Assembly (NCBI GenBank): GCA_950097015.1
Contig: CATNEN010000012.1
Span: 2,046,001-2,110,000, forward strand
Source of the DNA: Macrostomum hystrix
Lineage: Eukaryota > Animalia > Platyhelminthes
Reading direction: 5' to 3'
DNA: 64,000 nt
Shown here: positions 31,836 to 52,189 of the stretch, in pieces
Position numbering within the stretch: position 1 is the first letter of the stretch
Layout of the letters: every line of letters starts with the position of its first letter
Position numbers and translations under genes: made by a program
The notes under the pieces: generated by a model
Told to the model about the DNA's origin: nothing
The model's database searches: none
What the model saw: only the letters and a program-made list of their open reading frames with translations

Positions 31836-32612
31836 GCTAGATCAGGGGAGACGCTCCTTCGATACATTTTTTTTCTGCCAAACTGCGTACAACTAATATA
31901 TTGATGTATCAATAATTCGTTCCAGTCTGATCTAGTTTTCTGTCACGCCTGAACTGCATGAATGATTAACTGCATATGCACTAAATAATGTTTATATAAA
32001 AAGATAAGATTATATATCTGGGGATGAGGAACTGTGAAAACAAGATGTGTTGAAAATAACCGAGCGTACTATATTGTTGTCTCATATTCACAATGCGTGT
32101 GCTGCAGCTTGATAACATTTCATATAAGGTAGATTTTTTGGGTGGACCTGTGCACTTCCTTAGTGCTTCGCCCATTAGCTTAAACTAATGTAAATGTAGC
32201 TCGTATATATCGAATTACAACTGGGTTCATTTCCACAGTTTCTACGGTTCTATTAAAAAGTTTTCCGCTTTGAATAACAGTTGTCGCTGTCTGGTCTATA
32301 ATGTATGCAAGTTAGTATAAACGTTGGTTAGTATGCTTTTTATTTGATTAAATTAACGCTTTTGTGACCCACTTTTTGCAAGATTGTGTGGGGCCCTATA
32401 AATGCGGCATAAATCATATTTTGGTACCAGGTCGGAAAGAGACTTATAAAAGCGCGTGCTATCAAGTTTCTGATAAATTGGTAAGAGATGAGAGAGGCAA
32501 TGGACAGGGTAGAGAGGCATTGGTGAGGGGAGTGGGATGAGGAGAAAGAGGAATGAGAGCGGAGACAGGTATTGTGTTAAATATAAATTGCGAGTTACCA
32601 CGAGTTACCACG

Positions 32613-33525
32613 GTGTTAACTGTGGTAGGTTGCAGTGATAACTGTGGTAGGTTGCAGTGGTAACTGGTAGGTTGCAGTGGTAACTGTGGTAGGTTGCAGT
32701 GGTAACTGTGGTAGGTTGCAGTGGTAACTGGTAGGTTGCAGTGGTAACTGTGGTAGGTTGCAGTGGTAACTGTGGTAGGTTGCAGTGGTAACTGTGGTAG
32801 GTTGCAGTGGTAACTGGTAGGTTGCAGTGGTAACTGTGGTAGGTTGCAGTGGTAACTGTGGTAGGTTGCAGTGGTAACTGGTAGGTTGCAGTGGTAACTG
32901 TGGTAGGTTGCAGTGGTAACTGGTAGGTTGCAGTGGTAACTGTGGTAGGTTGCAGTGGTAACTGTGGTAGGTTGCAGTGGTAACTGGTAGGTTGCAGTGG
33001 TAACTGTGGTAGGTTGCAGTGGTAACTGGTAGGTTGCAGTGGTAACTGGTAGGTTGCAGTGGTAACTGTGGTAGGTTGCAGTGGTAACTGTGGTAGGTTG
33101 CAGTGGTAACTGTGGTAGGTTGCAGTGGTAACTGTGGTAGGTTGCAGTGGTAACTGTGGTAGGTTGCAGTGGTAACTGGTAGGTTGCAGTGGTAACTGTG
33201 GTAGGTTGCAGTGGTAACTGTGGTAGGTTGCAGTGGTAACTGGTAGGTTGCAGTGGTAACTGTGGTAGGTTGCAGTGGTAACTGGTAGGTTGCAGTGGTA
33301 ACTGGTAGGTTGCAGTGGTAACTGTGGTAGGTTGCAGTGGTAACTGTGGTAGGTTGCAGTGGTAACTGGTAGGTTGCAGTGGTAACTGTGGTAGGTTGCA
33401 GTGGTAACTGTGGTAGGTTGCAGTGGTAACTGGTAGGTTGCAGTGGTAACTGTGGTAGGTTGCAGTGGTAACTGGTAGGTTGCAGTGGTAACTGTGGTAG
33501 GTTGCAGTGGTAACTGTGGTAGGTA
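32613..33525. repeat. 19/22-bp minisatellite (GTAGGTTGCAGTGGTAACT[GTG])
   Basis: Two unit lengths differing by GTG, about 43 copies. Confidence 0.98.
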
Positions 33526-35128
33526 TTGCATTTAATAGTATAGCTCATAGATCTGGCGACACAACATTGCTGCGAGCGAAAATGTGGCTCTGCGTTTGCT
33601 CGTAGTCCCATAGGACTAAAATTACGATTACAATGAGTTGAAAATGATCGAACACACCGGAACTAGAGTGGTATATCGAATCTGCCGATGCTGTTAAATT
33701 CTGTCAACTACAGGAGATTCAGACAGTCTGTGAGAGAGAGCATTGCTTGAAAATTGCTAGCCTCTGATAGATTTAAGCGACACTTCAAAATTTGTACTTT
33801 TATTATTGTTGCCTGCGGCTGCAGACAAGCAGAGCTGCAAGCTCGTTTCGGGCAATTTTGTGTTGATTTTCATATTTGTTCTTGGCGCAAGTTTCAACAT
33901 AGACTTGGGGACTGTCAGCAAGAAGTGGTCCAACTGCCACAGGCGGGCCTCGGCCTGCAAGCGGGGGGGCCATTGTTCTTAATTGGTTATTATTTTAGTT
34001 TCTTAAACTAAATGCAGCAGAGAGTTGAGACAGAGAGACAACTGTGCTGCAACTGCTATGAGTTTTTTTACTGCTTCAGACAGCATTTTTCTTCATTTCT
34101 TGTTTTTCTTGCTTTTTGCAGTTTATCTAAGCTGAGAGGGTGACACACCCTGGATACAGGCCATGTCTGGGGTTGGGGACTATATTAGTTGTTTGAGAGC
34201 ACGGCCATAAAGCTCATAAGGGTTTGAGAAGGAGGGAGGGAGGGCTGTATCAGGGTTAGCCGAGGACATGGCAGCCTCAACTACACACACGCATGCATGC
34301 GATGTGGACAAATACTGGCTTGTAGGAAAGACAGACACAGGAGGGTGAGAAAGAAGGAAATACACTTGGGGAATAGCTTTCTTTTTGTGCTAGAAAGGTG
34401 GACAGACAGACTAAAGAGGAAATGAGGGAGCGAAGACATAATCATGGTTATATATTGGCCACCTCTCTTTGTTCCGTATAGGAAAAAAGCCACCCTTGAT
34501 TAATAGTCGGGGAGATTCTAGGTCGCTTGATCTCTTCTTCACGTTCCCCCGGGCTCTGCCTCCCCTTTCTCTTACTCTCTGGCCTTCATGTACTTTGGCT
34601 TGGCTTCAGAATTCAATGCGTTCACTGAGGAGCGAGTGAGTGTGTGCGAGAGAGAGAGAGGGAGAGTTCACACTGAGAAGACTGGCGCCTCCCCTCCCTC
34701 AGAGTTGCGGCCCCGCCATTGGCCTCAGATCGGTTTGGACGCCTTTGTAGGCAGTCAGTTTAGTCCCTTCCCTTCATATTGCTGTTCCCATTCTATGTCT
34801 GTTCCGCCTCTCTGTCTCTCTCTCTCTCAGCCTAAAACTCCCCTCTTTGCCTTTCAAAGCTTTGGCGCCTTCTCATTGGCTGTGGCTGCACACTGTATTA
34901 ACAACAGTTAAGAAACTAAAGTAATATTTCAGTCTGGGCTAGATTGTACATGCCCGATGCAAGCGAGCTAGCCAGAGACAGGCGCAGAGAAAGTCAGAAA
35001 GAGAAATAAACAACTGTAAGCGGAACTCGTCGGAACTGACTAAATAGCGATCCCCAGTTCCTATTCAGAATACGAATTCCTAAATTAGAATGAGGAAACC
35101 TCACTGACTTCCGATTCGAGCTGAGACT

Positions 35129-38100
35129 ATGAATTTGAAGCTGCTGCTGCTGCTGCTGCAGCAGCTTCTGTGCCGACCAGCCGTTGGCTTGTTCCTGCAC
35201 ACCACCTCGGCGATTGTTCGAAGTCCGCCAACAATGCCAACTGAACCGTCTGTAAGATCATTGTTTGGCTATCGAGTCGCTGTAGTTCGCGACAATGACA
35301 GCGGTAAATTCTACCTGCTGGTGACGGATCCCGCTGGCTATCATTCGGACACCAAATTAGCCTCGGGAACGGCGCACCGATGCATCATCAGCTCGGCCGA
35401 CTTCAATTCCAGCGCAGAAATATGCGGCGGCTCCGGCTTGCCGTTCAGCTTCGCGCCACCGCAGTCTGAAGCGCAGAGCGGCTTCGTGAAGTTCTCCCAG
35501 TTTGGCGCCAGCCTGGCCAGCCTGTCAGACGGTCAGTTTGTCGTGTGCGCTCCAGGCTACAATTTCGCCAGTCCAACTTTCAACCTGACGGCTACGCCGG
35601 GCCTATGCGGCTACTGGCGCTCGCCCAGCTCAGAGCCGGTGTGGCTGCACAAATTCTTCCCCTACTTGACCGGCTCCAGGGACGAGAGAGCGTTCGCAAA
35701 CTGCCTCGGTGGCTTCCAGGCTACGCTAACGAGCACTGGCGGCGGCACCCAGCTGACAGTTTCCGGTCCGTTCTGCATGCTTCAGCGCCTCGCCCTTGTT
35801 GTCGACATCGACGCTTCTAACAATGGCAGTGTCGCTTCTAGCACTACATGGAATGTAAATAATTCTTCAAAGCTGGCCAGGCACAAAACTATTCAGAAAA
35901 ACTATCTGGGCTACTCGATGGCTGCCGATGCAGACAGCGGCAACATCTACGCTACGTCACCATTCATTCATGCTGGCTCGTCTCATGCTCACTTGCTGGC
36001 TCGTCTCAGATCCGGCGAACTTGATGCCGATTCCATCGACGCGCAAATCGGCATGCCATTTTATAACCACCTGAATCGCGCATTTAACTACATAGGCTAC
36101 TCCAGCGCCGTGATTAACAGCCCGTTGAAGCAGATAAAAAAGGCACTACTGCTCGGCGCCCCGTTCCAATCGGACGGCATCGGTGCAGATGGCCTAGACC
36201 GCGGCTGTGTTTTCGTCCTGCCACTAGAAGACCACAGAGGGAACCCTATCAACTTGGTGTCTGCGACGCCAGTCCGCTACTGCGGCACGGAGCCAGGCGG
36301 TCGTCTCGGCACTGACGTGCTGGGCATCGGCGACATTAACTACGACGGCATTGAAGACTTCGCGGTCGGCTGTCCCGGCTGTGGCGTCAACGGCAGTGGT
36401 TCGGTCTACCTGTTCCTCGGATTGTCGAACTACGCGAATCCGACTACTCAACTTGTGCCATTCGAGATTGTCGCAGCCGCCGATCTAAAAGGCCTCGCTC
36501 CGAAGCTCAGCGGTTTTGGCTGGAGTCTGGCGCTGGCTCCAGACATGGATGGCAACACCGTCAGTGAGCTAGTGGTCGGCGCCGTGACAAGCCATCACGC
36601 TGTCGTGTTGCCCGGCCGCCTGCTGCTTGTCACGGAGATTGACTACAGCTACGAAAATGCTAAATCTAAAGTCAATTTTAATCCGGACATTCCGATTGAC
36701 TTGTTCATCGAGCAACTTGTCAAACCAGTGGTGGCAACCATCCGCATGCACACGCGGCCTGGTGTGGACCTGTCCAATTACAGTTTCAACCTGCGAGTCC
36801 GGCCGGAGGAACTGGTGAGCACTGAGCAGCAGCGTAGATTTTTAATTCAGCTGACCGACTGTCCGACAGCGTCGAAGCCAGATTCCGACGGCTGGTGCCA
36901 GCTGACAAGAGCACCCGGGCCAACAGCGAACGTGATTCATTTTTCGCTGACTTTCCGCCTGCGTCCACTGCTAAATGGTCTGCGCCACTCTTCGCCCGAG
37001 GACATGCTGCGCGACATCAGCTTGCTCATGCGCTGGAACATCACCGACCGGTCTATCTCGGCTGGCCGACCCGGTGGTCTCTTTCCTGCTGTACTGCACG
37101 GTGGGCGCGTCTTCCCCGGCTACGAGGACGCTTTCTTGACAACGCTGTACCGCTTCAAGACCGGCGTCTGCGCCAAAAACTTTGAATGCGATCCTAGCGG
37201 AAATATTCACATTGAGCTGCTCAGCAGCCCCTCGGTGATGTTGAACACTTACGAGCAGCTGAATGTGAAGCTGCTAATTAATAAGGGCAGCCATTTTCCA
37301 TTCTATGGTGGTACGGCAATTCGACTGATGCCAAGCGACGGTGTACATGTCCTGGACAGTGTAACACTGCGAGAGAAAAATCCCGGCAAGAACGACACAG
37401 TTAGCAAAGCCCGCTACTGGAGCCAGCACGATGAGATCCTGCTGACGGAGCCCTTCCCTGATCCTCCGGACGTCATGACTCGAAAAGGCAGCGGCAAGCT
37501 TGAGGTCACATTGCGACTCAAGTTCGACAGTCGACGCACAGCCTACCGGGTCGGATTTCGCCTGCTGAATCTGCTGGGCGACATCGGCGGCTTCCAAGAT
37601 TTCGTCACCCGCGACAAGAATACATTAGACAACTGGGCTGAGCTGGTTGTCAACTTCAACACCAGCATCAACCTTCGGCTTCTGTCAGCCACCGACGAAT
37701 CTGCAGTTGCGGACGCGCGCCAATCAGCGAGGGAGTCTGACCTGCTGGGCCTTAGAGGCACTACCGCCGCCTCCGTGATCGGGCCGGGCCTGCAGCACAC
37801 TTTTGAGCTATTAGCATCAATGCGGCCGGCGGCGTCTATTCGCGGTATCGGCATCACCGTCCGCGTACCGTTAGTAACGGACCGGGGCCACTTATTGCTT
37901 TACTTTCCCAAGAACTCCATGGCCTGGTCGCATGCCACGGAGACTGGCAGAGCGACCAGCCAGAGCCAGTACCTGCCTGGCCTTCCATTTACTTCGGACG
38001 ATGAAGAAGGCTTCGTTGGGAATTTGGGTCGCGAGTGTCTGCCTTCAGAGCTAGACCTGGCGTTGATGATGTCCCGGCCTCCGCTGACGCTGCTGGAAAG

Positions 38101-38737
38101 CCAGCACGAGGTCAATATGTTCAACAGCTACAGCGTCAAGACATCCAGCGAAAACGCAACGTCAAGTGGGAGCCACGGCGCTCGGCATCGTCGCAACTCA
38201 CCAGATGACACTTCGCCGACGTCCCAAGCGTCTACTTCTACGTCACCAACGCCGCCATCCGAGCCGACATTCGACTGCGACCGACCTGAGCTGGCACCTC
38301 TGCCGTTCCGCTGTGTCACTTTCAACTGTCCAGTGCGCGAGCTCGGCCGCAATGGCATCAGAGTCGTCGACCGCGTCTTTCTGCACGTGCATGCGCGCCT
38401 CTGGTCGCCAACCTTCTTCCGGCATCACCTCGGTCGATTCAACATAAGGTCGAGCGTCAGGCTGACACTGCCGCCAACTGAGATGTCAGCCTTTCGTCAC
38501 GTTGTTGTCGCTGGAAATTCCAGCGTCCTGCAGACTTTCCTGTTTCTGAACATCCGGCCGCCCATCGTCGATCGAGTACCCTGGGGCTACATCATCCTTG
38601 CCATCTTCCTGGGCATCTGGTTGCTTCTGCTGCTAATACTGCTGCTCTGGTATTGCAATTTCTTTCGGCGAAAGACGCCACAGGACTACAATTCTGTGCC
38701 GCAGAAGGACGCCAACGATGACGACTTTTATCGATGA
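35129..38737 (+). CDS. Integrin alpha subunit, single exon, 1202 aa (no alpha-I domain)
   Basis: Leu-rich signal peptide; seven FG-GAP-like blades (LFGYRV, QFGASL..VVCAPG, CLGGFQ, YLGYSM, YIGYS..LLGAP, LGTDV..DINYDGIEDFAVGCP, FGWSL..DMDGNTVSELVVGA); furin-type RHRR; TM helix; cytoplasmic NFFRR (GFFKR-like) and a short tail. Confidence 0.95.
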   Translation: MNLKLLLLLLQQLLCRPAVGLFLHTTSAIVRSPPTMPTEPSVRSLFGYRVAVVRDNDSGKFYLLVTDPAGYHSDTKLASGTAHRCIISSADFNSSAEICGGSGLPFSFAPPQSEAQSGFVKFSQFGASLASLSDGQFVVCAPGYNFASPTFNLTATPGLCGYWRSPSSEPVWLHKFFPYLTGSRDERAFANCLGGFQATLTSTGGGTQLTVSGPFCMLQRLALVVDIDASNNGSVASSTTWNVNNSSKLARHKTIQKNYLGYSMAADADSGNIYATSPFIHAGSSHAHLLARLRSGELDADSIDAQIGMPFYNHLNRAFNYIGYSSAVINSPLKQIKKALLLGAPFQSDGIGADGLDRGCVFVLPLEDHRGNPINLVSATPVRYCGTEPGGRLGTDVLGIGDINYDGIEDFAVGCPGCGVNGSGSVYLFLGLSNYANPTTQLVPFEIVAAADLKGLAPKLSGFGWSLALAPDMDGNTVSELVVGAVTSHHAVVLPGRLLLVTEIDYSYENAKSKVNFNPDIPIDLFIEQLVKPVVATIRMHTRPGVDLSNYSFNLRVRPEELVSTEQQRRFLIQLTDCPTASKPDSDGWCQLTRAPGPTANVIHFSLTFRLRPLLNGLRHSSPEDMLRDISLLMRWNITDRSISAGRPGGLFPAVLHGGRVFPGYEDAFLTTLYRFKTGVCAKNFECDPSGNIHIELLSSPSVMLNTYEQLNVKLLINKGSHFPFYGGTAIRLMPSDGVHVLDSVTLREKNPGKNDTVSKARYWSQHDEILLTEPFPDPPDVMTRKGSGKLEVTLRLKFDSRRTAYRVGFRLLNLLGDIGGFQDFVTRDKNTLDNWAELVVNFNTSINLRLLSATDESAVADARQSARESDLLGLRGTTAASVIGPGLQHTFELLASMRPAASIRGIGITVRVPLVTDRGHLLLYFPKNSMAWSHATETGRATSQSQYLPGLPFTSDDEEGFVGNLGRECLPSELDLALMMSRPPLTLLESQHEVNMFNSYSVKTSSENATSSGSHGARHRRNSPDDTSPTSQASTSTSPTPPSEPTFDCDRPELAPLPFRCVTFNCPVRELGRNGIRVVDRVFLHVHARLWSPTFFRHHLGRFNIRSSVRLTLPPTEMSAFRHVVVAGNSSVLQTFLFLNIRPPIVDRVPWGYIILAIFLGIWLLLLLILLLWYCNFFRRKTPQDYNSVPQKDANDDDFYR

Positions 38738-41204
38738 TCATGGCGCAGCTACTAAAACTGCTCCTGGTCTACCAGATGTTTTCTTATTGTTTAATTTAAT
38801 CAGTTATAGATAAGCCTTGCGTCCCTGGAGAGGTGACTTTACAAAGAAATTTCCAATCTTTGAAAAGTTGCAATTAATTACTTTTGGGATTTTTGGAGGG
38901 GAGTTAATCTGAAGTTGTGAATTTGGCATGACAGTAAGTTTGCGGTGTTAAGAAGCAGGACTGAGAAATCCTTATCTCTAGCTGTTGCCTCTCCAGACTG
39001 TCTTCCCAAAGTCTTTGTAATTCTAGGGTTAAAGTGTTCCACTTTTTGCATCATTCTGCTAGCAACAATTCTCTTTGTTGATATTGTTTGACACCTATCT
39101 TGCATTCAGAATTATATTTTACTAATTGTAGGCTAGTAGCTTTGGGTCGCCGACCTCCCTCGAGACTGCTTATTCTACAAACTTTGCCATTGCTTTTGCA
39201 TGCTTGTGCAATTAGCTTGCTACACTACTGTTTTAGTAGCATTATTCGGTCATGTTATTCAGTGTGGCTACAATAGCTTATTCGATAATCTACTTTACCG
39301 TTCTAATTTTCAAATCAATAATAGTTAATACTAAGCAAATTATGGGCCAGAATAATGCCTCCATACCTTACTTTTAAGTTACTTTTGAGTCATTTCTAGT
39401 TTTTTACATAATGCGCTTGCTTTGATCGCTAGTTTTCACGATGCCTCTTTAATAAGTTTTCTCGTTTCTCAGAATAGTTCTAACTTTCTGTTCGCTATTT
39501 GCTTGCCAGTCAGTAATAGGACACACTACATTTGATCGATCTCTGAACTGAATTTTTAACGGCATATATTTTATATAGAGTTAAGTCGCGAACATTTTTC
39601 TCTATCATTTCTCGCGATGATTAGTTGCTTTAGGCATTAAGCCACAATGCTATCAATATAACTACATATATTTGCAGCAAAGCATTCATTTATTTGTAAT
39701 TATTGATATTTCTTACCTAAACTAGCCATTATGCAAATATAAAACATTTTCCCTCCTCCATTAACAAAATCGCTTGGTATATTCTTATCTTATATAAATA
39801 TCTGAAAATAAGACGTAGATAAACATATAATAAAGACTTTAAATATGACAATTTTCACTTACCAAACTAAACTGTATACCCAGTTGTTGAAGTTACTATT
39901 TATAAAAAATTACTGTTATTTTAATCAAACTTACACGAGGTTCAAAAAGTGAAAAATGAAGCTATTTCTATAATTTCTAGGACTAGGTTAAATTTGAAAT
40001 CCAAAAAATTTAAATTTTGCTTGCTTCTTGTGCAATCACTATCTACGAGTATTCTAAAAATTTTCCCGCTAGAAAACAATAGAAAACGCGGCTGATAAAT
40101 TCATAAATGATAATTTTCGATATGGGCTGGCAAGACTTCCCATGGTAGAGAAACCGAAGGAATAAACTTTAAAATGTTTCCTAAAGCATTTTCTAGGCAT
40201 AACTTACTTTGAGTTAAGTAACACGACGTGACACGACGAAATATATATGTTATTAAAAACGAATTTTAATTATTTTAACACATTGAAGCAAAGAAATTTG
40301 CACATTTTTTAAAACAAAACAATTATTAATAACAGGGTATTTAGTTTTGCATAGGCCACAATTCACAAAATAAAAAAACTATTAATAAGCAAAACAAAAG
40401 ACAATACAAAAATTACAGCTGAAAATACTCGCTCTATAGACTACTGACACCCTAGTAGTCAGATTTGACTGCGTATTAAACAAAAAATCAATGAGCGAGA
40501 AATCAAGAATGAAAATCTAAATCAATAATAATTTAGAACAGACGGAAGGAAGGTGTAGCAGCAATCTTAGCGGCCAAACAGACAGTTGTAGAATAATACT
40601 TGTAATCGGATGCAGAATAACATTTGTAAGTAGAACTATTTGGTAGATCATAAATTGCATAGACAGCATATACGGGTGGATGTCTGTAGCTTTGTAGAAG
40701 CTGAAATCACTGTAAACCTAATCCAAGCAAATATAGTACGATTTTCTTCACATAAGCTATTGCCTTGCATTTTCCTTCTAAAAGTGGCTGCACCTCTGCG
40801 CACAATTCAGTGGCCTGACAATTTTAAGTTGGACAAAACAGCCGTTTCCTGCCCTCTACTAATTACCCTGCACCTTTGCACTTCCTATACTTATTGAGGT
40901 CTTGCTAAAGTAGGAAATTCTCAACAGTCTTGTGGATGATTCTGAGCTTATGACATTGCTACGTGCTCGTATGTGTGATGTGATACTAATACTAAAATGC
41001 AATTAAAGATCAGTCTTCCTGGAAGCGCTTCATAAACCCGTAGCACAGGGAACTATAGGTAACACAAGAAGCCTGATGATACAAGGAATCAGGTAACATA
41101 TGGAAACGTGTAAGACGGGGGTGCCTTGTAACAGTGTAGCAGAGTAAAACCTATAAATTCTGGGATCAACCCTGAACAAACTGATGCATTCCCGTATTCG
41201 AGCA

Positions 41205-43381
41205 TCAAAGCTGCACCGGTTTGTCAACAAACCAGCGTCTTCGTTGAAAGAATCCGCAACGATAAAGGCAGGTGATTATGACCGCCAGTAGCAGCAGCCC
41301 AACAAGTACGGCCACCAGAACGGCCACGAGCGGCACACGATAGGCCGGACGAGCTGTGACGCCGCGGAAGAAGAAAAACTGTTCAACACTGGCCGAGGCT
41401 GGCGGCTCCGAAGACCCTGGCGTTTGCGATAGAGACGATAGCCCGTAGGGCGCAGGCCCCACAGCGACGGCTGCCAAGCTCGAGCGCATTTGCACCTCGG
41501 GCACCCGGAAGCGGAACAGGGTGTCCGCCCACAGTAGGCCGTCAAAAACCACTCGGGCACCCTCCGTGGCGTTTATTCGGGGAATTCGGCATTGGATGAC
41601 GGCGCATCTGATGGTGCCGAAAGCGTCCGAGTTGCGGCCGGCGCACTCAACCGGTTCCAGCGGTGCCCGACCGCTCCCGCTGCCGCCGCCACCAAACAAT
41701 GAAGAGCGCTCCTTCATCTGCTGCTGCCTTTCAGCCGCTTCCAGCTTTGCCTCCGCTGACGGAGATGCCACTACCGCTCGGCGTTGCCTACCTGACGGAG
41801 TCGGCGGCGAACTGGTCGACGGAGTACCTTTCATGGCGATCTCAGCCTCGCGCCACAGCGTCAGGTTCAGCGGATTCAGCAGCTGGGTATAGCTGCAGAA
41901 GGCGCCAGTCAACGGCCTGTCCGAGGTCGCCTCGAGAACCCTCGGCCCGGCGGCGAGCAGTTCCCATTGCCGCTCTGCAGTAGCCAGCGACAGCTTGTCC
42001 AGCAGGTAGACCAGCGTGTCGCCAGACTCAGTTTGAATTGGAACAGTCAGATTAACCTCGATGTTGTGCATCGGTGATGGCCCGGCGTTAAACAGCTCAT
42101 AGCTGTGATTGAAATGCGCTCCCAGTGTTTCTAGCCGATAGCGCCGTCGGGCCAGTGGCGGCACCGCTTCCGTGCGCGTGTCGATTACCACGTCACGGCT
42201 GGCAACTGCCGCTGTCAGGCGCAGTTGGGCCTTGCTGAATATGGCGAAGCTTATCGACGCTGAGCTGCGCGCTCCTCCGGCTTCTTCACCCGCCTCCGTT
42301 AATGCAGCCTCCTGGCATGTGACTTCAGCCTGGACGGTGAAGTTTGACTCGCCACCGGCATCCAGATGATCGCCTAGAGACAGGTCTGCCGTGACGACTA
42401 GCGGACTGCCGTAGGGAGCCAGCTGACGGCCCAGAGAGCAGGCCAGGATTCGATCACGCACAACAGCATCTTCGGCAGACTCGCTGCAACTGATCTCGTC
42501 GGCAAAGGCGCGATCATCTGTCTGCCACTGGACTCCTACACGAGCCGGCAGGCGAAATCGCAGCAGCGGCTCGTGCGCCGCCTCTCCATCGTTAGTAACA
42601 ATGGCCTTCAGCCGCAACCGGGTGCCGCGCTCCCCACCGTAGACTACGATTCCTTCTCCGGTGGTATCGTCTCCGTCCAAGTCGCCGAGGCTACTTCGCT
42701 GGAGCTGCAGGCCGAGCCGCGGCCGGCAGACATTGTCCGGTCCGCACTCCGGCCGCAGTGGCTGCATCTGGGGAAAGTCTGTCACAGTATCTGAGGCCGG
42801 ATGCAGCGCCGGACGCATTGCCGAGGCATTTTTACCGGACTGCGGCGGCCAGTCACTGAACTGCCAGGCAGGCGTGAGCCGCAGCTGAGCTACGATTTGG
42901 GTGACAATGTCGGCCCGCACTGCCGTCGGCACAATGTCGGCGACCTCCAGAAACACGAAGCTTTTGTTACAGGCGATGCTCACTCTGCGGAGGACGATAC
43001 CACTGCTGCCGTTGCTGTTGGTCGCGTTGCTCGAGGCCGAGCGCAGGCGCTTCCTGGCAGCCAGGCGGCTGTCTAGGTCTAGCTGCATCTCCACTTCCAA
43101 CTGTCGGCCGGCGAGGTCGACCCGACTGCCGCAGACCAGCTTGAACTCTCCCTCAAGTCGAATTTGACAGTCGTCAGAGGCGGTTGCCGCGGCCAAGCCG
43201 CCGCATTTTCGAACGTCAATAAGCGCTGGCGCGCGCAGACTGCCTGCGTCGACACTGAGCCTCACAGCCGGCCTTGTCTTGTACAGGGTGATGGCGCCGC
43301 TGCTGTGCGAACCGACCAGCACATCTGTATAGCCGTTGCCGTCAAAGTCGACGCCGCCGCTAATGGACCAGCCGAATTGTT
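41205..43381 (-). CDS. Integrin alpha (minus) exon 2: blade 7, thigh/calf domains, TM and tail
   Basis: ORF 41205..43424 trimmed to the CCGCAG acceptor. Confidence 0.93.
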
Positions 43382-46300
43382 CTGCGGAGGTTTGAGAATG
43401 GAATGATGTCATAGTGCTGTTCATATGGGCTAGAAATGGTGACAGTTTATTTTACCGTGTTGTTTTTCCACCAGCAAAAAAAACCTCTCTTGGTTATAGC
43501 TCGTAATTAGCTCACAGTTGGCATTGCACTGCAGTAAATCTGGTGCCAACTCAATAAACACTGCACCGGATTAGGAAATTATCACATGAGCGATAAAATG
43601 GCATTGCTATAGTAGACACAAGGAGTACTGCTGCACTTTTTCAATTTGGCGGCTGATGCGCAAGCTGAGAATGTTTCTATTGCATCGCAGCTTTTATTAA
43701 TTATTTCCTACTATCTGAAATAGTGTTGCTTCACACTTCCGTTTATGTCTCTCCTAATTTTGTGCCGACAGCATCAATTGCTGACTTTTTTGTCAATCAT
43801 TCTTGGAAAGCTAACTTAAAAGATATACCCACTGTTATAGTTTAATTATAGGGTATATGTTTACTACATAGATCCCCTACCTCCCATGTCTGTCCCTCCC
43901 CTTCCCTGTCCGTCCATCTTCCTCCCTGTCTGTCCATCTTTCTTCCGTGTCTGTCCATCTTCCTTCCCTGTCTGTCCATCTTTCTTCCGTGTCTGTCCAT
44001 CTTCCTTCCCTGTCTGTCCATATTTCTTCCCTGTCTGTCCATATTTCCTCCCTATCTGTCCATCTTCCTTCCTGTCTGTCCATCCTTCTTCCCTATCTGT
44101 CCATCTTCCTTCCCTGTCTGTCCATCTTCCTCCCTGTCTGTCCATCTTCCTCCCTATCTGTCCATCTTCCTCCCTGTCTGTCCATCTTCCTTCCCTATCT
44201 GTCCATCTTCCTTCCCTGTCTATCCATCTTCCTCCCTGTCCGTTCATCTTCCTCCCTGTCTGTCCATCTTTCTTCCCTGTCTGTCCATCTTCCTCCCTGT
44301 CTGTCCATCTTTCTTCCCTGTCTGTCCATCTTCCTCCCTGTCTGTCCATCTTTCTTCACTGTCTGTCCATCTTCCTCCCTGTCTTTCCATTTTAGCAGTC
44401 TACTATGCAATGCTTCTACCTCCCATGACTTTCTCTCCTGTTCCTGGCTCTTCCTCTGCAAGCATAAATATCAAGACGCTCTTGGCTACTGCAAGCTCAC
44501 TCACTGTTCAACTGAGCGCAAATTCGCAAGCCTACTTACTAGAAAAAAAGCCAAATAATCGTATTTGTCGACTCAAACTAAACTCGTTCAGGGCTGCTAC
44601 TCAGGACTGTGGGATCAGCAAGACCAATCGACGCGATTTCCCTCGACCACTACTCAAACACTGGGGTGTATTCTGGATGGATTTTCTGGAACAGGGCCCG
44701 CTGATGGAAGTTGGGATTTCACGGAATAGATGAAATAGCAAGAAAGAGGACGCGTAGCAAGTTCTTTCTGTGCGTAATTAGATCCCGGTTCGAATGCACG
44801 AAAGCTCTATGCATAATGCGCACTGCAGTCTTTGATGCTTAAATGCACTGATTGATAAAATGCCATTAATTTGCGCAATGAACAATAAAATAATTATTAT
44901 TTGTCGCGAAGAAATGATGGAAAAAAATTGACTGTTAGCTGATCCTGGAGTCCCATGGCAGACCTTGTTAGAAGTTTCGCGTCTTCTTCTTGAAGATCCG
45001 CCTACAGTCGCCATCTTTCGGGTCCATCTTTCATAAAAGTTTTTTGTCAACCCGGCCAAATGGAATAATCAAGTAAAAATCTAAAGCAGACAAGAGGAGC
45101 CCCTACTGCTTTGTGTACGAATGAAGTGGTATGGAGCCAATCCCCTCAGGAAAATACGTGATCGGATCTTGGCCAACTAAGCAGAGGCCCCGGTGGGACT
45201 GTCGAAGATTGAACTTTGCGGCGAGGCCCACTTTTTTGTCTCCTTTCGCCTTCCGTAGCCGAAGGCCCTAAAAAGGGCTTGTTCAAGCTGAACTTTCGAT
45301 CGCATTACATATGGCTTTGACCCGCTTGCTTAATATACCTACACTCGCAATCCCCTTGGTGTATTTCTTAGTCCTCCACTGAAAGCCTGCTTGGTGGCAT
45401 TTGCTAGCGCGCGTGTCCTTTTATATTTAGCATTTAGCATAACCCCTGGCAACTTTTGCTTATGACTTGTGACTTCACACACAGCTCCACACCATAGCCT
45501 TACCTGTCTGTCTATCTCACCCTCAGTAGACTTTGGCTTTGATCTATCTCTCTACGTTTTTTTCTATATCTGCCTCACTCTTCATCTCTCTTCCCTCTCA
45601 TCTCCCTTCTCTCTACCTCTATCTATCCACCGTATCCATATCCTTTCCCAGCTCCCTTCTCTCCCTTCTTTATAAAGTTAGACTGCATGAAGGTGTTCAT
45701 AATCATCCGAAATGACTACACCTTTTTGTGTGGCCTGGTCCTGGTCTGGTCTTGCGACTCTCTCAGGCCCAACTGTTCATGCCTCCCTGTTAGACACCGC
45801 TTAGCGAAACTATAAGTCAAAGCATTTTAGCCTCGCCAGCTGTCAGGCTTGAATCTGCCGCAGCCTATATTCTACAATAGGAAGCCGCGATTGTCAGTAC
45901 AGCATTCGCAAACAACCCAGTCGCAATGGCATCAACCACTACGGCTGGAATTCCTTCATGGGAGGGAGAGAGAGGCAGAGACAGATGCAGAAAGATTTGT
46001 TTGGTCCGCGTTCACATACGTTATTTCCATTTTCAAACGCCGAAGAACCCTAAAACAAGTTTCATAAGCAACTGTTGTTTTTCACATATACCTTTGTCCG
46101 CCTATTGAACAGAGTTACCTTTACTTCAGGGCTTTTGTTCAATTATCTGTCTGTTCCAGATCGCTGTACACTTATTTCCAATGATTTCTGCGTATCATAT
46201 CTGGCGATTTCAATTTGAAAACTAAGCGAGTATTGTGGCTAGCAGGAAAGAATATAGCGAGATGTGAAGGGAGATCTAGTGAAAGACAGACAGACAGAGA

Positions 46301-49232
46301 GAGAAGAGGCTGCAGTACTGGAAGTGCCAACACTGACTGACCAAATGCTTTTGCGCCAATAAGCTGCACACACACACACTGCATTTGCAACGCATCAGTT
46401 CCCTTCTTCACCTCCCTGATTCCCCCTTTCTCCCCCCCACTAGCCTCCTCCCCCCGCCCCTAGCAGCAACAGCAGCAGCAGCGGCGTCAGAAGGCCTTCC
46501 TTCACATCTCCCGCGACGTCGAGACAGAATCTTCGAATCGAGCCTCCGAATCTACCCAGATCCCCATCATTCCGACTGGCCGCTCCCCTCCTCCATTTTC
46601 CCCTCGCTTCCCCACACGCGTTAACAAGGTCGGGATTCTTGGGGTCTGCGAAACAGCAGTGTTGGAATCTAGGGAGTTGGGGATACACAAGTTGTGAGCC
46701 TGCATTTGGTCAGCGCACGAACTGTCTGGATATGGAATATAACAAAAATGCGCATTTACTAAATCCTTCAACCTCCCAATGATCGAATCAGCCATGAATT
46801 GCTTATTAATTGATCGTAATTTTATCGTTTTTCCCTCAAAATTTAACTTTCGCATTCCTAGCATTCTGGAGCCGTATTTATTACGCATTTTAGGGCTTAG
46901 TTGCTGGATCCTAAAAAACCTCTCGAATTTGCATTCTTGCCTCCAATTTTGTTCCGTATTTTTGTTGCTGCCACCAAGTTGCAGCGCAGTTAAAAACTTC
47001 TAGAATCGCTATTTTCAATTGCAGTGCAGGCACCAGCAGTATCAAGTTTAGGTTTAAAAAAACTTTTCTCTGTCACTCAACTAAACCAATAAAATTTGTT
47101 TACAAGTTTCTGTTAACAACAGTGATAACGAGAGCAACTTTGAATGTACATAAGAGCTATTCCACGAGTATAGTCAGAATGTACATACTAGACACAAACC
47201 CCTGAGGCAATGTACACATGCTCTCCCGCCTGTGCTGGGGAATGAGTTAAGGGGCATTGTACACATGCTCTCCCGCCTGTGCTGGGGAATGAGTTAAGGG
47301 GGCAATGTACACATGCTCTCCCGCCTGTGCTGGGGAATGACTTAAGGGGCAATGTACACATGCTCTCCCGCCTGTGCTGGGGAATGAGTTAAGGGGGCAA
47401 TGTACACATGCTCTCCTGCATGTGCTGGGGAATGAGTTAAGGGGGCAATGTACACATGCTCTCCCGCATGTGCTGGGGAATGAGTTAAGCGGGCAATGTA
47501 CTCATGGTCTTCCGCCTGTGCTGGGGAATGAGTTAAGCGGGCAATGTACTCATGGTCTTCCGCCTGTGCTGGGGAATGAGTTAAGCGGGCAATGTACTCA
47601 TGGTCTTCCGCCTGTGCTGGGGAATGGGGGCAATTTAGTTTTATTCCGAAGACAATTCGAGCAAATTATTGCGCCCCTCAAATCTATAAAAAGTGAGAGC
47701 GCTCCTCAAAACTGCTCACTCAGCACTGTTCCATCGTCCAGTAAGTGACTCTCCGCTCGCAGCACCTGATGCGGCTTCAGGCTAACCGGCCGTCCGCGAC
47801 GTCCCAGGTAAACGTGCACCTCGCCGTTGCCAGCGGGGCCGCAGTACGGACAGCCAACCGCCAGGTCGTCCAGTCCGTCGTCATCCAGATCGCCCACATT
47901 TGCCACAGAGTGTCCGAATCGTCCAACTTTCCAGTCGGCGGCCTCCAGCACCGTGGGCACGGGGTCTACAGAATAGGTTCCGTCGACTTGACGACTGCTG
48001 ACGGAGCCGAGGCCGTCACCTCCACCGCCGTAGAAAATGTAAACCCGACCGGCGTTCACGCGTGACGCGCTGCTGTTTGAGTGATAAGGCGCTCCAATCG
48101 CAATGTCACTATAGCCATCGCCGTTGAGATCTCCCGTCGCCAAGCTGTAGCCGAAGCCATCACCAACTCGGCCAAGAGTGTCTTTGACGTGCAACTCGCC
48201 GGCCATGAAGACATCCATCACCGACACGGCACCCTTCCAGTTGGCGTCAGCCCACATCGACCTGCTGGCTAGCAGGTGCGGCGGACGTCGGCGTCGGGAA
48301 TGTCCATCTCCACCAGCGCTGCCACCAGCTGGTCGTAGCAGCTCGGCCAGCCGCACCGATTGTCCGAGATAGAGCGATCGGCCTTTGCCCGCCAGCAAAT
48401 CTTCGATGCCCGACTGTCGCCTGTAGGTCCAGCCGCCTGTGAAGTTGCGATTAACAAACCGGCCAACGTACAGTTCACCGTTGCTGTCGTGGCAGCCTGG
48501 CAGGCCGGCAGCGAAGTAGAGAATGGAGTCGTTGCCTTCTTTGTAGCCCAGCAAGCTGGTGCTGAAGCCACTCAGACACTGGCCGAGGTCCGTCACCGCT
48601 GAGGCTGGCGCTGAGGATGTGTTGCACGGACTGATCACGTGATAGGGATAACTCAGTCCCGGATAGACCAGGCACTCGCCGATAGCCGACCAGGCCTCAC
48701 CAACGCCGGCTTTGCTGACGAAGCGTGGTGCGCAGGCGCTAAAATAGCCGTCCCGATCGACGCTTGTGGCGGCCACCGCCGCCCCCATCCACTGGCCGGC
48801 CCGGAAGCCGGGTTCCACGTGGCCGATGGCCCGGTAGTCGGCCAGATTCGACCAGCGCGACGCGGATGGCGTCCGCTCGCAGGACCAGCCGGCAGCCGAC
48901 CGGAACTCGCACCGGTAGGCCCTGCCAATGCGCTTATCGTCTGGTGTCTCGCCGCCCCAGCTGCTGACATAGTCCAGCGGAGCACCCACTATGGCGTAGG
49001 GAATGCCCTGGTCTGAGTAAGCGGCTATTGAGTAGCCGAAGTAGCTGCCTTGCCGATGATGAACGAAGGTCGAAGCCGTGGCGCTCCCGGCTGCCGCTGA
49101 TTCTAGAAGCTCCAGTCTTGCAGGCCCATCGTCGGATTCGGAGGCCGGGCTCCCAGCCGGTGCTAAGGCTGGTGCTGGCGAAGCCTGAATCAGAAGCAGC
49201 AGCAGCAGCAGGGCAGCAGTTCCCGGAAGCAT
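41205..49232 (-). CDS. Integrin alpha subunit, two exons 49232-47720 and 43381-41205, 1229 aa (no alpha-I domain)
   Basis: Phase-1 junction CTGA|GTGAGC ... CCGCAG|AACAATTC joins GTVL-K-QFGWSISGG. Signal peptide; FG-GAP blades with DLNGDGYSD, DLDDDGLDD and DFDGNGYTD Ca2+ loops; RQRR cleavage site; TM helix; GFFQR motif. Confidence 0.95.
43889..44385. repeat. 20-21-bp pyrimidine-rich minisatellite (CTGTCTGTCCATCTTCCTCC) in the integrin intron
   Basis: About 24 imperfect copies. Confidence 0.95.
47205..47630. repeat. 47-48-bp minisatellite (CAATGTACACATGCTCTCCCGCCTGTGCTGGGGAATGAGTTAAGGGG) near the donor end of the integrin intron
   Basis: About 9 copies in two variant blocks. Confidence 0.96.
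47720..49232 (-). CDS. Integrin alpha (minus) exon 1: signal peptide and propeller blades 1-6
   Basis: ORF 47706..49232 truncated at the GTGAGC donor. Confidence 0.93.
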
Positions 49233-50391: not shown

Positions 50392-52189
50392 CCCTCTACC
50401 TGAATCTCCCCCTCTCTCAGAATCTTCCCCTCTCACTGAATCTTCCCCTCTCCTAGAATCTTCCCCTCTCCCTGAATCTTTGCCTCTCCCTGAATCTTCC
50501 CCTCTCCCAGAATCTTCCCCTCTCCTTGAATCTTCCCCTCTCCCAGAATCTTCCCCTCTCCTTGAATCTTCCCCTCTCCCAGAATCTTCACCTCTCCCTG
50601 AATCTTCCCCTCTCCTAGAATCTTCCCCTCTCCTTGAATCTTCCCCTCTCCCAGAATCTTCACCTCTCCCTGAATCTTCCCCTCTCCTAGAATCTTCCCC
50701 TCTCCTTGAATCTTCCCCTCTCCTAGAATCTTCCCCTCTCCTTGAATCTTCCCCTCTCCCAGAATCTTCCCCTCTCCTAGAATCTTCCCCTCTCCCTGAA
50801 TCTTTCCCTCTCCTTGAATCTTCCCCTCTCCTTGAATCTTCCCCTCTCCTTGAATCTTCCCTCTCATATAATCTTCCCCTCTCCTAGAATCTTCCCCTCT
50901 CCCTGAATCTTTCCCTCTCCCTGAATCTTTCCCTCTCCCTGAATCTTCCCCTCTCCCTGAATCTTCCCCTCTCCTAGAATCTTCCCCTCTCCCTGAATCT
51001 TCCCCTCTCCTAGAATCTTCCCCTCTCCTTGAATCTTCCCCTCTCCTTGAATCTTCCCCTCTCCTTGAATCTTCCCCTCTCCCTGAATCTTCCCCTCTCC
51101 TAGAATCTTCCCCTCTCCCTGAATCTTCCCCTCTCCTAGAATCTTCCCCTCTCCTAGAATCTTCCCCTCTCCTAGAATCTTCCCCTCTCCTAGAATCTTC
51201 CCCTCTCCTTGAATCTTCCCCTCTCCCAGAATATTCACCTCTCCTATAATCATCCCCTCTCCTAGAATCTTCCCCTCTCCCTGAATCTTCCCCTCTCACA
51301 GAATCTTCCCCTCTCCTATAATCTTCCCCTCTCCCAGAATATTCACCTCTCTTAGAATCTTCCCCTCTCCCTGAATCTTTCCCTCTCCCTGAATCTTTCC
51401 CTCTCCCTGAATCTTTCCCTCTCCCTGAATCTTCCCCTCTCACAGAATCTTCCCCTCTCCTATAATCTTCCCCTCTCCCAGAATATTCACCTCTCCTATA
51501 ATCATCCCCTCTCCTAGAATCTTCCCCTCTCCTTGAATCTTCCCTCTCATATAATCTTCCCCTCTCCTAGAATCTTCCCCTCTCCCTGAATCTTCTCCTC
51601 TCCCTGAATCTTCCCCTCTCCCTGAATCTTCCCCTCTCCCTGAATCTTCCCCTCTCCCTGAATCTTCCCCTCTCCCTGAATCTTCCCCTCTCACAGAATC
51701 TTCCCCTCTCCTATAATCTTCCCCTCTCCCAGAATATTCACCTCTCTTAGAATCTTCCCCTCTCCCTGAATCTTCCCCTCTCCCTGAATCTTCCCCTCTC
51801 CCTGAATCTTCCCCTCTCCCTGAATCTTCCCCTCTCACAGAATCTTCCCCTCTCCTATAATCTTCCCCTCTCCCAGAATATTCACCTCTCTTAGAATCTT
51901 CCCCTCTCCCTGAATCTTCCCCTCTCCCTGAATCTTCCCCTCTCCCTGAATCTTCCCCTCTCACAGAATCTTCCCCTCTCCTATAATCTTCCCCTCTCCC
52001 AGAATATTCACCTCTCTTAGAATCTTCCCCTCTCCCTGAATCTTCCCCTCTCACAGAATCTTCCCCTCTCCTATAATCTTCCCCTCTCCCAGAATATTCA
52101 CCTCTCTTAGAATCTTCCCCTCTCCCTGAATCTTTCCCTCTCCCTGAATCTTTCCCTCTCCCTGAATCTTTCCCTCTCCCTGAATCTTT
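50392..52189. repeat. 18-bp pyrimidine-rich satellite (GAATCTTCCCCTCTCCCT), about 100 copies
   Basis: Period 18 with occasional 17-bp units; source of the GRGEDS/ESSPL ORFs. Confidence 0.99.

Follow-up and report, generated by a model that had tools for sequence, protein, structure and literature searches.

A cysteine pair in blade 6 of the beta-propeller of two Macrostomum hystrix integrin alpha subunits and its distribution among flatworms

Introduction

A platyhelminth-specific group of alpha-integrins was named by Beckmann et al. (2012), and a schistosome member of the alpha-Int1 type was linked to oocyte development (PMC3531407). In that study, which did not include Macrostomum, the flatworm alphas are separate from the PS1 and PS2 types; it mentions neither the cysteines of the FG-GAP repeats nor the blade-6 motif that is the subject of this report. 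In vertebrate integrin alpha subunits the propeller cysteines are confined to blades 1–3, with none listed for blade 6 (PMC12383024). The window analysed here, a stretch of 64,000 nucleotides from Macrostomum hystrix (contig CATNEN010000012.1 of assembly GCA_950097015.1, positions 2,046,001 to 2,110,000), contains two genes for genuine integrin alpha subunits without an I-domain, one on the plus and one on the minus strand. By sequence both are assigned to the platyhelminth-specific group, and in both of them blade 6 of the propeller carries a Cys-Pro-x-Cys motif where canonical subunits have the GAP sequence from which the repeat takes its name. All positions given below are those of the window.

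Two further kinds of described system invite comparison. The CXXC motifs of the integrin beta3 PSI domain, together with the endogenous thiol-isomerase activity proposed for alphaIIbbeta3, are likewise a case of CXXC in an integrin ectodomain with a proposed redox function, but they belong to a different subunit, domain and fold, and the two cysteines of each motif are not bonded to one another (PMC12383024). The redox-switch sites that have been mapped in integrins comprise C177-C184 of the beta A-domain, the PSI/EGF region and the alpha hinge, and the blade-6 pair is not among them.

Results

The motif in the two window genes

The motif of the plus-strand gene, CPGC, occupies residues 415–418 (36371–36382, plus strand) and that of the minus-strand gene, CPYC, residues 461–464 (47852–47841, minus strand), as read from the translations of 36290–36460 and 47760–47930. 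Both translations are identical to the strings quoted in the initial annotation of this DNA, which had also placed the motifs in blade 6. That placement was borne out by HMMER alignment to the solved alphaIIb chains, in which each motif falls without gaps on A378-P379-Y380-G381, so that CPGC replaces the canonical A-P-x-G, and CPYC the canonical A-P-Y-G, of FG-GAP blade 6. Compared with the canonical G-A-P-[YF]-G, the Ala and the second Gly are both replaced by Cys and the Pro between them is kept. The assignment of the CPGC motif draws in addition on an alignment of 69 integrin alpha sequences and on an AlphaFold2 (AF2) model of the propeller, and that of CPYC on transcript contigs and on the AF2 model of the M. 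lignano orthologue (P0232). In fold and Ca2+ hairpin, blade 6 is the same as in the canonical RGD-type subunits alphaIIb, alphaV and alpha5 (3fcs, 1jv2 and 7nxd), and the spacing is also the same, the Ca2+ loop being followed by four residues, x-P-x-x, a Gly-rich loop and strand 3; the difference is that the canonical subunits have Ala and Gly where the flatworm blade has the pair of cysteines.

The motif stretch comes right after the third Ca2+ loop (D365-D373 in alphaIIb numbering, from the HMMER alignment), which reads DINYDGIED at residues 402–410 of the plus protein (36332–36358, plus strand) and DLDDDGLDD at residues 448–456 of the minus protein (47865–47891, minus strand). The AF2 model of the plus propeller has C415 as the final residue of beta-strand 2 and C418 in the next turn, with a local pLDDT (predicted local distance difference test) score of ~95. 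In the model of the minus-type orthologue P0232 the first cysteine likewise ends strand 2 and the second is in the loop, with a pLDDT of ~97. The second cysteine is thus at i+3 from the first in both models, in the turn ahead of strand 3. The integrin alpha Ca2+ site belongs to the bottom of the propeller, on the opposite side (PMC12383024). The earlier remark that the motif directly follows a Ca2+-binding loop is therefore correct along the sequence, but a full beta-strand separates the two, and propeller topology would place the motif at the other end of strand 2 from the loop, near in sequence and apart in space. Because of this topology, tuning of the Ca2+ site by the motif is unlikely.

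The two proteins are otherwise very divergent, as had been noted, their top BLASTP segment showing 34% identity over 116 residues centred on blade 6. CPYC was found in minus-gene transcript contigs of four public runs, and the sole variant close to it is a synonymous change (C>A) in an Ala codon at 47859, four codons upstream, seen in one run. Comparison of the plus gene with M. lignano shows a synonymous difference (TGT versus TGC) in both Cys codons, amid many other synonymous changes; this pattern indicates that the motif cysteines are under purifying selection.

Distribution of the cysteine pair

An exhaustive HMMER search with the plus protein returned just three close relatives, each of them a Macrostomum protein with CPGC, and the matches further down were mostly bacterial FG-GAP proteins mixed with true integrins; a word-based protein search returned M. 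lignano only. The M. lignano orthologues of the window genes and one further paralogue carry the motif. The integrin of the tapeworm Schistocephalus has SCPFC at the blade-6 site, and when it was used as query a clade was retrieved from Spirometra, Taenia, Hymenolepis, Rodentolepis, Mesocestoides, Echinococcus, Opisthorchis, four Schistosoma species and the monogenean Cichlidogyrus, in which all retrieved members covering blade 6 read [GS]CP[YF]C. By size and closest relatives (schistosome alpha-Int1 and Clonorchis sinensis 'alpha-5') this neodermatan clade is the platyhelminth alpha1 family, and 15 of its sequences, from cestodes, trematodes and a monogenean, carry the motif. The residue after the proline varies, being Gly in the plus type (CPGC), Tyr in the minus type and the flukes (CPYC) and Phe in the cestodes (CPFC).

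The blade-6 comparison across metazoans that the initial annotation had called for was made with the 69-sequence alignment. Both columns are Cys in 15 of the 16 flatworm rows, and the full pair occurs in none of the 53 non-flatworm integrin alphas sampled, which range from sponge to mammal and represent a sponge, a cnidarian, nematodes, arthropods, molluscs, annelids, a brachiopod, a nemertean, echinoderms, a hemichordate, amphioxus and vertebrates. Among these 53 rows the first column is Cys in one (a pipefish) and the second in none. The pipefish sequence, an integrin alpha-5-like protein (P0085), reads GCPYGG in blade 6, without the second cysteine; an oyster alpha6-like protein (P0037) has GCP in blade 5. 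The flatworm exception is a Dicrocoelium protein (P0193) that keeps an ordinary GAP. A single-cysteine state was never seen among the retrieved flatworm sequences: the pair is complete in all 15 motif-bearing rows of the alignment, and both cysteines are present in the further motif-bearing sequences outside it, the monogenean one included.

The retrieved flatworm sequences extend from Macrostomorpha to Cestoda, Trematoda and Monogenea, with no planarian and no clear member of the alpha2 or alpha3 family among them, and over this span the motif has been retained. Taken by sequence, it appears to be a deep flatworm signature rather than a quirk of two paralogues. The earlier suggestion of a lineage-specific integrin alpha subfamily thus holds in that the motif is confined to flatworms in this sample, but the lineage is far wider than was proposed, taking in M. 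lignano as well as cestodes, trematodes and a monogenean. The feature had also been put forward as undescribed, and no description of the motif in integrins was found in the literature searched, although the group itself is the one named in PMC3531407.

Phylogeny and origin of the motif

Maximum-likelihood trees were calculated under the posterior mean site frequency (PMSF) model with the motif columns removed, for the 69-row set and for a set of 29 rows. A branch with a Shimodaira–Hasegawa-like approximate likelihood ratio test (SH-aLRT) value of 95 (69 rows) or 94 (29 rows) separates all 16 flatworm rows from the others, and the flatworm alphas cluster outside the PS1, PS2 and vertebrate clades, in agreement with PMC3531407 and subject to a long-branch caveat. 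A possible sister relation links the neodermatan alpha1 clade, the Sm-alpha-Int1 type, to the minus gene and its M. lignano orthologue, with an SH-aLRT of only 85–86 and with the alpha2–alpha4 families barely sampled. The plus clade groups with the long-branched, GAP-bearing Dicrocoelium protein, a grouping flagged by the software as a possible long-branch artefact. A tree in which all CPxC rows form one clade excluding the Dicrocoelium protein was rejected (p-AU 0.008, approximately unbiased test, 29-row set).

On this tree the CPxC label needs two changes, either one early gain and one loss or two gains. Since all flatworm sequences form a single monophyletic group in the tree, we favour the former, in which the motif would have been gained early in flatworm evolution, inherited by both window paralogues and lost in at least one neodermatan paralogue, that of Dicrocoelium. 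Two gains are equally parsimonious and the sampling of other flatworm families is thin. An origin of CPxC on two occasions, once in the plus-type and once in the minus-type lineage, would imply a strong and recurring selective advantage. The rejection of a single CPxC clade without the Dicrocoelium protein fits such an origin, as does the independent evolution of the same pair in a prokaryotic protein described below. However, the flatworm alphas sampled all lie beyond the one well-supported branch, so that inheritance with one loss suffices, and the Dicrocoelium branch is very long and may be misplaced. We regard two separate gains as the less probable history; judged on the sequences, shared ancestry would be sufficient to explain the motif in both window paralogues.

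Cysteine complement of the ectodomains

When the cysteines were tabulated by alignment column, the 18 ectodomain cysteines of the plus protein could all be placed in plausible pairs, with 415–418 as one pair. The minus protein has 22, of which the canonical pairs are intact and 461 and 464 are left adjacent to one another. The other cysteines specific to the plus clade also come in pairs, C192/C216 and C360/C385. C216, in the blade-3 sequence GPFC (35774–35776, plus strand), has probably taken over the pairing with C192 in place of the missing canonical cysteine at the alphaIIb C146 position. The minus-clade-specific blade-3 cysteine C247, in GLPGC (48492–48494, minus strand), and C860 in the leg region encoded by exon 2 are shared by both Macrostomum species and, once the canonical pairs are assigned, have no obvious partner except each other. 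The extra blade-3 cysteines pointed out in the initial annotation are thus present, but they lie outside the shared feature: a common system with the blade-6 pair was rejected, as they are specific to Macrostomum, neodermatans have Ser there and blade 3 is opposite blade 6.

The neodermatan alpha1 proteins differ from the Macrostomum proteins in having loop insertions and, within the insertion between blades 6 and 7, a third conserved cysteine (P0158, P0179, P0181–P0186, P0189 and P0191); the Macrostomum window genes have neither. Most neodermatan alpha1 proteins also have an odd number of ectodomain cysteines (19), which by sequence would imply that a thiol close to the CXXC is free or is bonded to another molecule.

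A cysteine pair at the same repeat position was found in a prokaryotic FG-GAP protein encoded on a prokaryote-like metagenome contig in ENA (P0060). As in the flatworm blade 6, its G-C-x-x-C comes after the Ca2+ loop, but there it is present in all 14 blades of two propellers, the Pro is not conserved, and the protein is not an integrin. Of its 32 cysteines, 28 belong to these pairs. The protein is an evolutionarily independent recurrence of the cysteine pair in an FG-GAP propeller. It is a secreted protein of 2046 residues (L002:1621–7761), in which the Ca2+ loop of each blade of the two propellers is followed by G-C-x-x-C-D-G; a third propeller, in the middle, is free of cysteines, and the gene comes after one for a GerE/sigma-70 region 4 helix-turn-helix protein.

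Identity and structure of the two genes

Pfam matches on the two proteins together comprise FG-GAP repeats, Integrin_A_Ig_2 and Integrin_A_Ig_3, those of the plus protein being FG-GAP and Integrin_A_Ig_3, and the solved structures in the PDB matched by HMMER are alphaIIb, alphaV and alpha5. The N-terminal region is a seven-bladed FG-GAP beta-propeller in both cases. The AF2 propeller models have predicted template modelling (pTM) scores of 0.88 (plus) and 0.87 (minus-type orthologue P0232), and with the plus model as a Foldseek query against the PDB the top 50 matches were all integrin alpha chains (TM-score 0.67–0.75). Ca2+ hairpins of the form DxDxDGxxD are found in blades 5, 6 and 7 of the minus gene and in blades 6 and 7 only of the plus gene. 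Ig-like leg domains, a single transmembrane segment and a GFFKR-like tail (CNFFRRK in the plus and CGFFQRR in the minus protein) are present, and the transmembrane segment and tail align to alphaIIb. No integrin beta gene is present in the window. The plus alpha is highly derived: blades 4 and 5 no longer have their Ca2+ loops, the canonical cysteine at the C146 position is gone, and the FG-GAP repeats are barely seen by Pfam (one match, 23 bits).

The plus gene is a single uninterrupted open reading frame (ORF) of 1202 codons in one 3.6-kb exon (35129–38737, plus strand), identified from the ORF list, Pfam and PDB matches, the AF2 model and the M. lignano orthologue; it encodes a signal peptide, the propeller, the Ig-like leg domains, the transmembrane segment and the tail. 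The minus gene starts at 49232 and has two exons. Exon 1 (47720–49232, minus strand) encodes the signal peptide and blades 1–6, and exon 2 (41205–43381, minus strand), defined by ORFs, Pfam matches, spliced contigs and the M. lignano orthologue, encodes blade 7, the thigh and calf domains, the transmembrane segment and the tail up to the stop codon. They are separated by an intron of 4338 nucleotides that is rich in simple repeats (43382–47719, minus strand, GT..AG). The predicted splice joins a phase-1 donor, CTGA|GTGAGC (last exon base 47720), to the acceptor CCGCAG|AA (first exon base 43381), giving a product of 1229 residues. Contigs from three small public runs, all of the same 2020 study, match the window at 99% or better and reproduce the 43381|47720 junction exactly, as GT..AG on the minus strand; the gene model is therefore correct and the gene is transcribed.

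The orthologue of the plus gene in M. lignano is P0001, with 67% identity, and that of the minus gene is P0232, with 65% identity over exon 2; a second plus-type paralogue was also found (P0008/P0157). The tail-to-tail order of the two alpha genes is conserved between the window (35129–49232) and M. lignano contig NIVC01000371.1 (L001:10001–23612), the stop codons being about 2.5 kb apart in the window and the called genes about 3.3 kb apart in M. lignano. Long simple or tandem repeats in the minus-gene intron and on the flanks of both genes give rise to spurious repeat-peptide ORFs (43864–44558, 32605–33611, 50433–51443 and 47374–47748), and some of the intronic repeats of the minus gene receive short contigs from the RNA runs.

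Discussion

We lean, with moderate confidence, towards a constitutive structural disulfide within the blade-6 motif. The two cysteines, at i and i+3, would bond to each other during folding in the endoplasmic reticulum (ER), the first ending strand 2 as it rises from the Ca2+ hairpin and the second lying across the Pro-containing turn, and the bond would staple the turn that leads from strand 2 into loop 2-3 of the blade. The sequences x-Pro-Gly-x and x-Pro-aromatic-x are classical beta-turns, in which the distance between Calpha(i) and Calpha(i+3) is within disulfide range. The strict co-occurrence of the two cysteines is as predicted for a bonded pair; the way in which the remaining cysteines of both window proteins fall into pairs, the long retention of the motif, the synonymous changes in its Cys codons and the recurrence of the pair in the prokaryotic propellers are consistent with the same arrangement.

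Several observations weigh against this reading. CXXC disulfides are often strained and reducible, so that 'constitutive' is an assumption. The cysteines of the beta3 PSI CXXC are not bonded within the motif in the crystal structure (PMC12383024) but bond elsewhere, and a CXXC sequence alone is therefore no proof of an intramotif bond. The third cysteine and the odd count of the neodermatan alpha1 proteins make other pairings, or exchange, possible in that lineage, and the ordinary GAP of the Dicrocoelium protein indicates that at least one paralogue can do without the motif.

A second reading, the redox switch raised in the initial annotation, which we consider unlikely, is that the pair is a redox-labile CXXC, opened by extracellular reductants or thiol isomerases or exchanging with a nearby thiol, and that this alters the loop on the top face of blade 6 and thereby the contact to the beta subunit or the affinity for ligand. 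Catalytic disulfides have the CXXC motif, and strain is usual in disulfides of i/i+3 spacing. From the AF2 models and propeller topology strand 2 would carry the motif at its upper end, on the side where the beta subunit and the ligand make contact, and the third cysteine of the neodermatan alpha1 proteins, in the adjacent 4-1 loop, together with their odd count fits thiol–disulfide exchange. Redox regulation of integrins through specific disulfides is, moreover, well established at other sites (PMC12383024). However, blade 6 offers neither a thioredoxin fold nor a helix dipole that could activate the N-terminal cysteine, the middle residues are merely the ancestral P-[YFG], the Macrostomum window genes are without the third cysteine, and the presence of the pair in every blade of two prokaryotic propellers looks like a structural solution. 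Less likely again is the more specific proposal that an exchange-competent disulfide on the head face, partnered by the third cysteine in neodermatans, gates heterodimer or ligand function by thiol–disulfide chemistry.

It is quite improbable that both cysteines are free thiols or a ligand pair for Zn2+ or Cu+ rather than a disulfide. Although CXXC pairs are common as metal ligands, a pair of thiolates is a poor metal site by itself, and the neighbouring columns of the Macrostomum proteins show no conserved His or Cys that could act as partner; in addition the ectodomain folds in the oxidising ER, and its even number of cysteines fits pairing.

The likeness to the glutaredoxin active site, on which the initial annotation had drawn, is weakened: a glutaredoxin-like domain is rejected, there being no Pfam glutaredoxin or thioredoxin match and the motif being placed where a propeller beta-strand ends rather than at the N-terminus of a helix. 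The tetrapeptide is identical to that of glutaredoxin in the minus gene only, the sister gene having CPGC and relatives CPFC, and CP[YF]C arises automatically when the A and the second G of the canonical G-A-P-[YF]-G are changed to C, so that CPYC appears to be a by-product of the ancestral P-[YF] and the likeness superficial. Chance, for which about 0.3 CXXC would be expected per protein of 1200 residues with 20 cysteines, is rejected by the shared column in the flatworm rows and in the sequences outside the alignment, and a motif private to this genome or genus by the neodermatan matches.

The cysteine pair is a simple marker, readable from sequence, of part of the platyhelminth-specific alpha-integrin group, from Macrostomum to tapeworms, flukes and a monogenean. 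If the structural disulfide that we favour is no more than a staple, the same solution would have been reached independently in a prokaryotic FG-GAP propeller. If instead the pair were exchange-competent, it would give the alpha propeller a site of redox control peculiar to the phylum, at a position where vertebrates have no cysteines; the propeller cysteines of vertebrates, in blades 1–3, are by contrast treated as purely structural. In either case the motif offers a concrete site at which to ask whether the adhesion receptors of flatworms are stabilised or redox-tuned in a way that those of their hosts are not, and a headpiece feature found only in flatworms, in a clade with a schistosome member linked to oocyte development, may be of practical interest.

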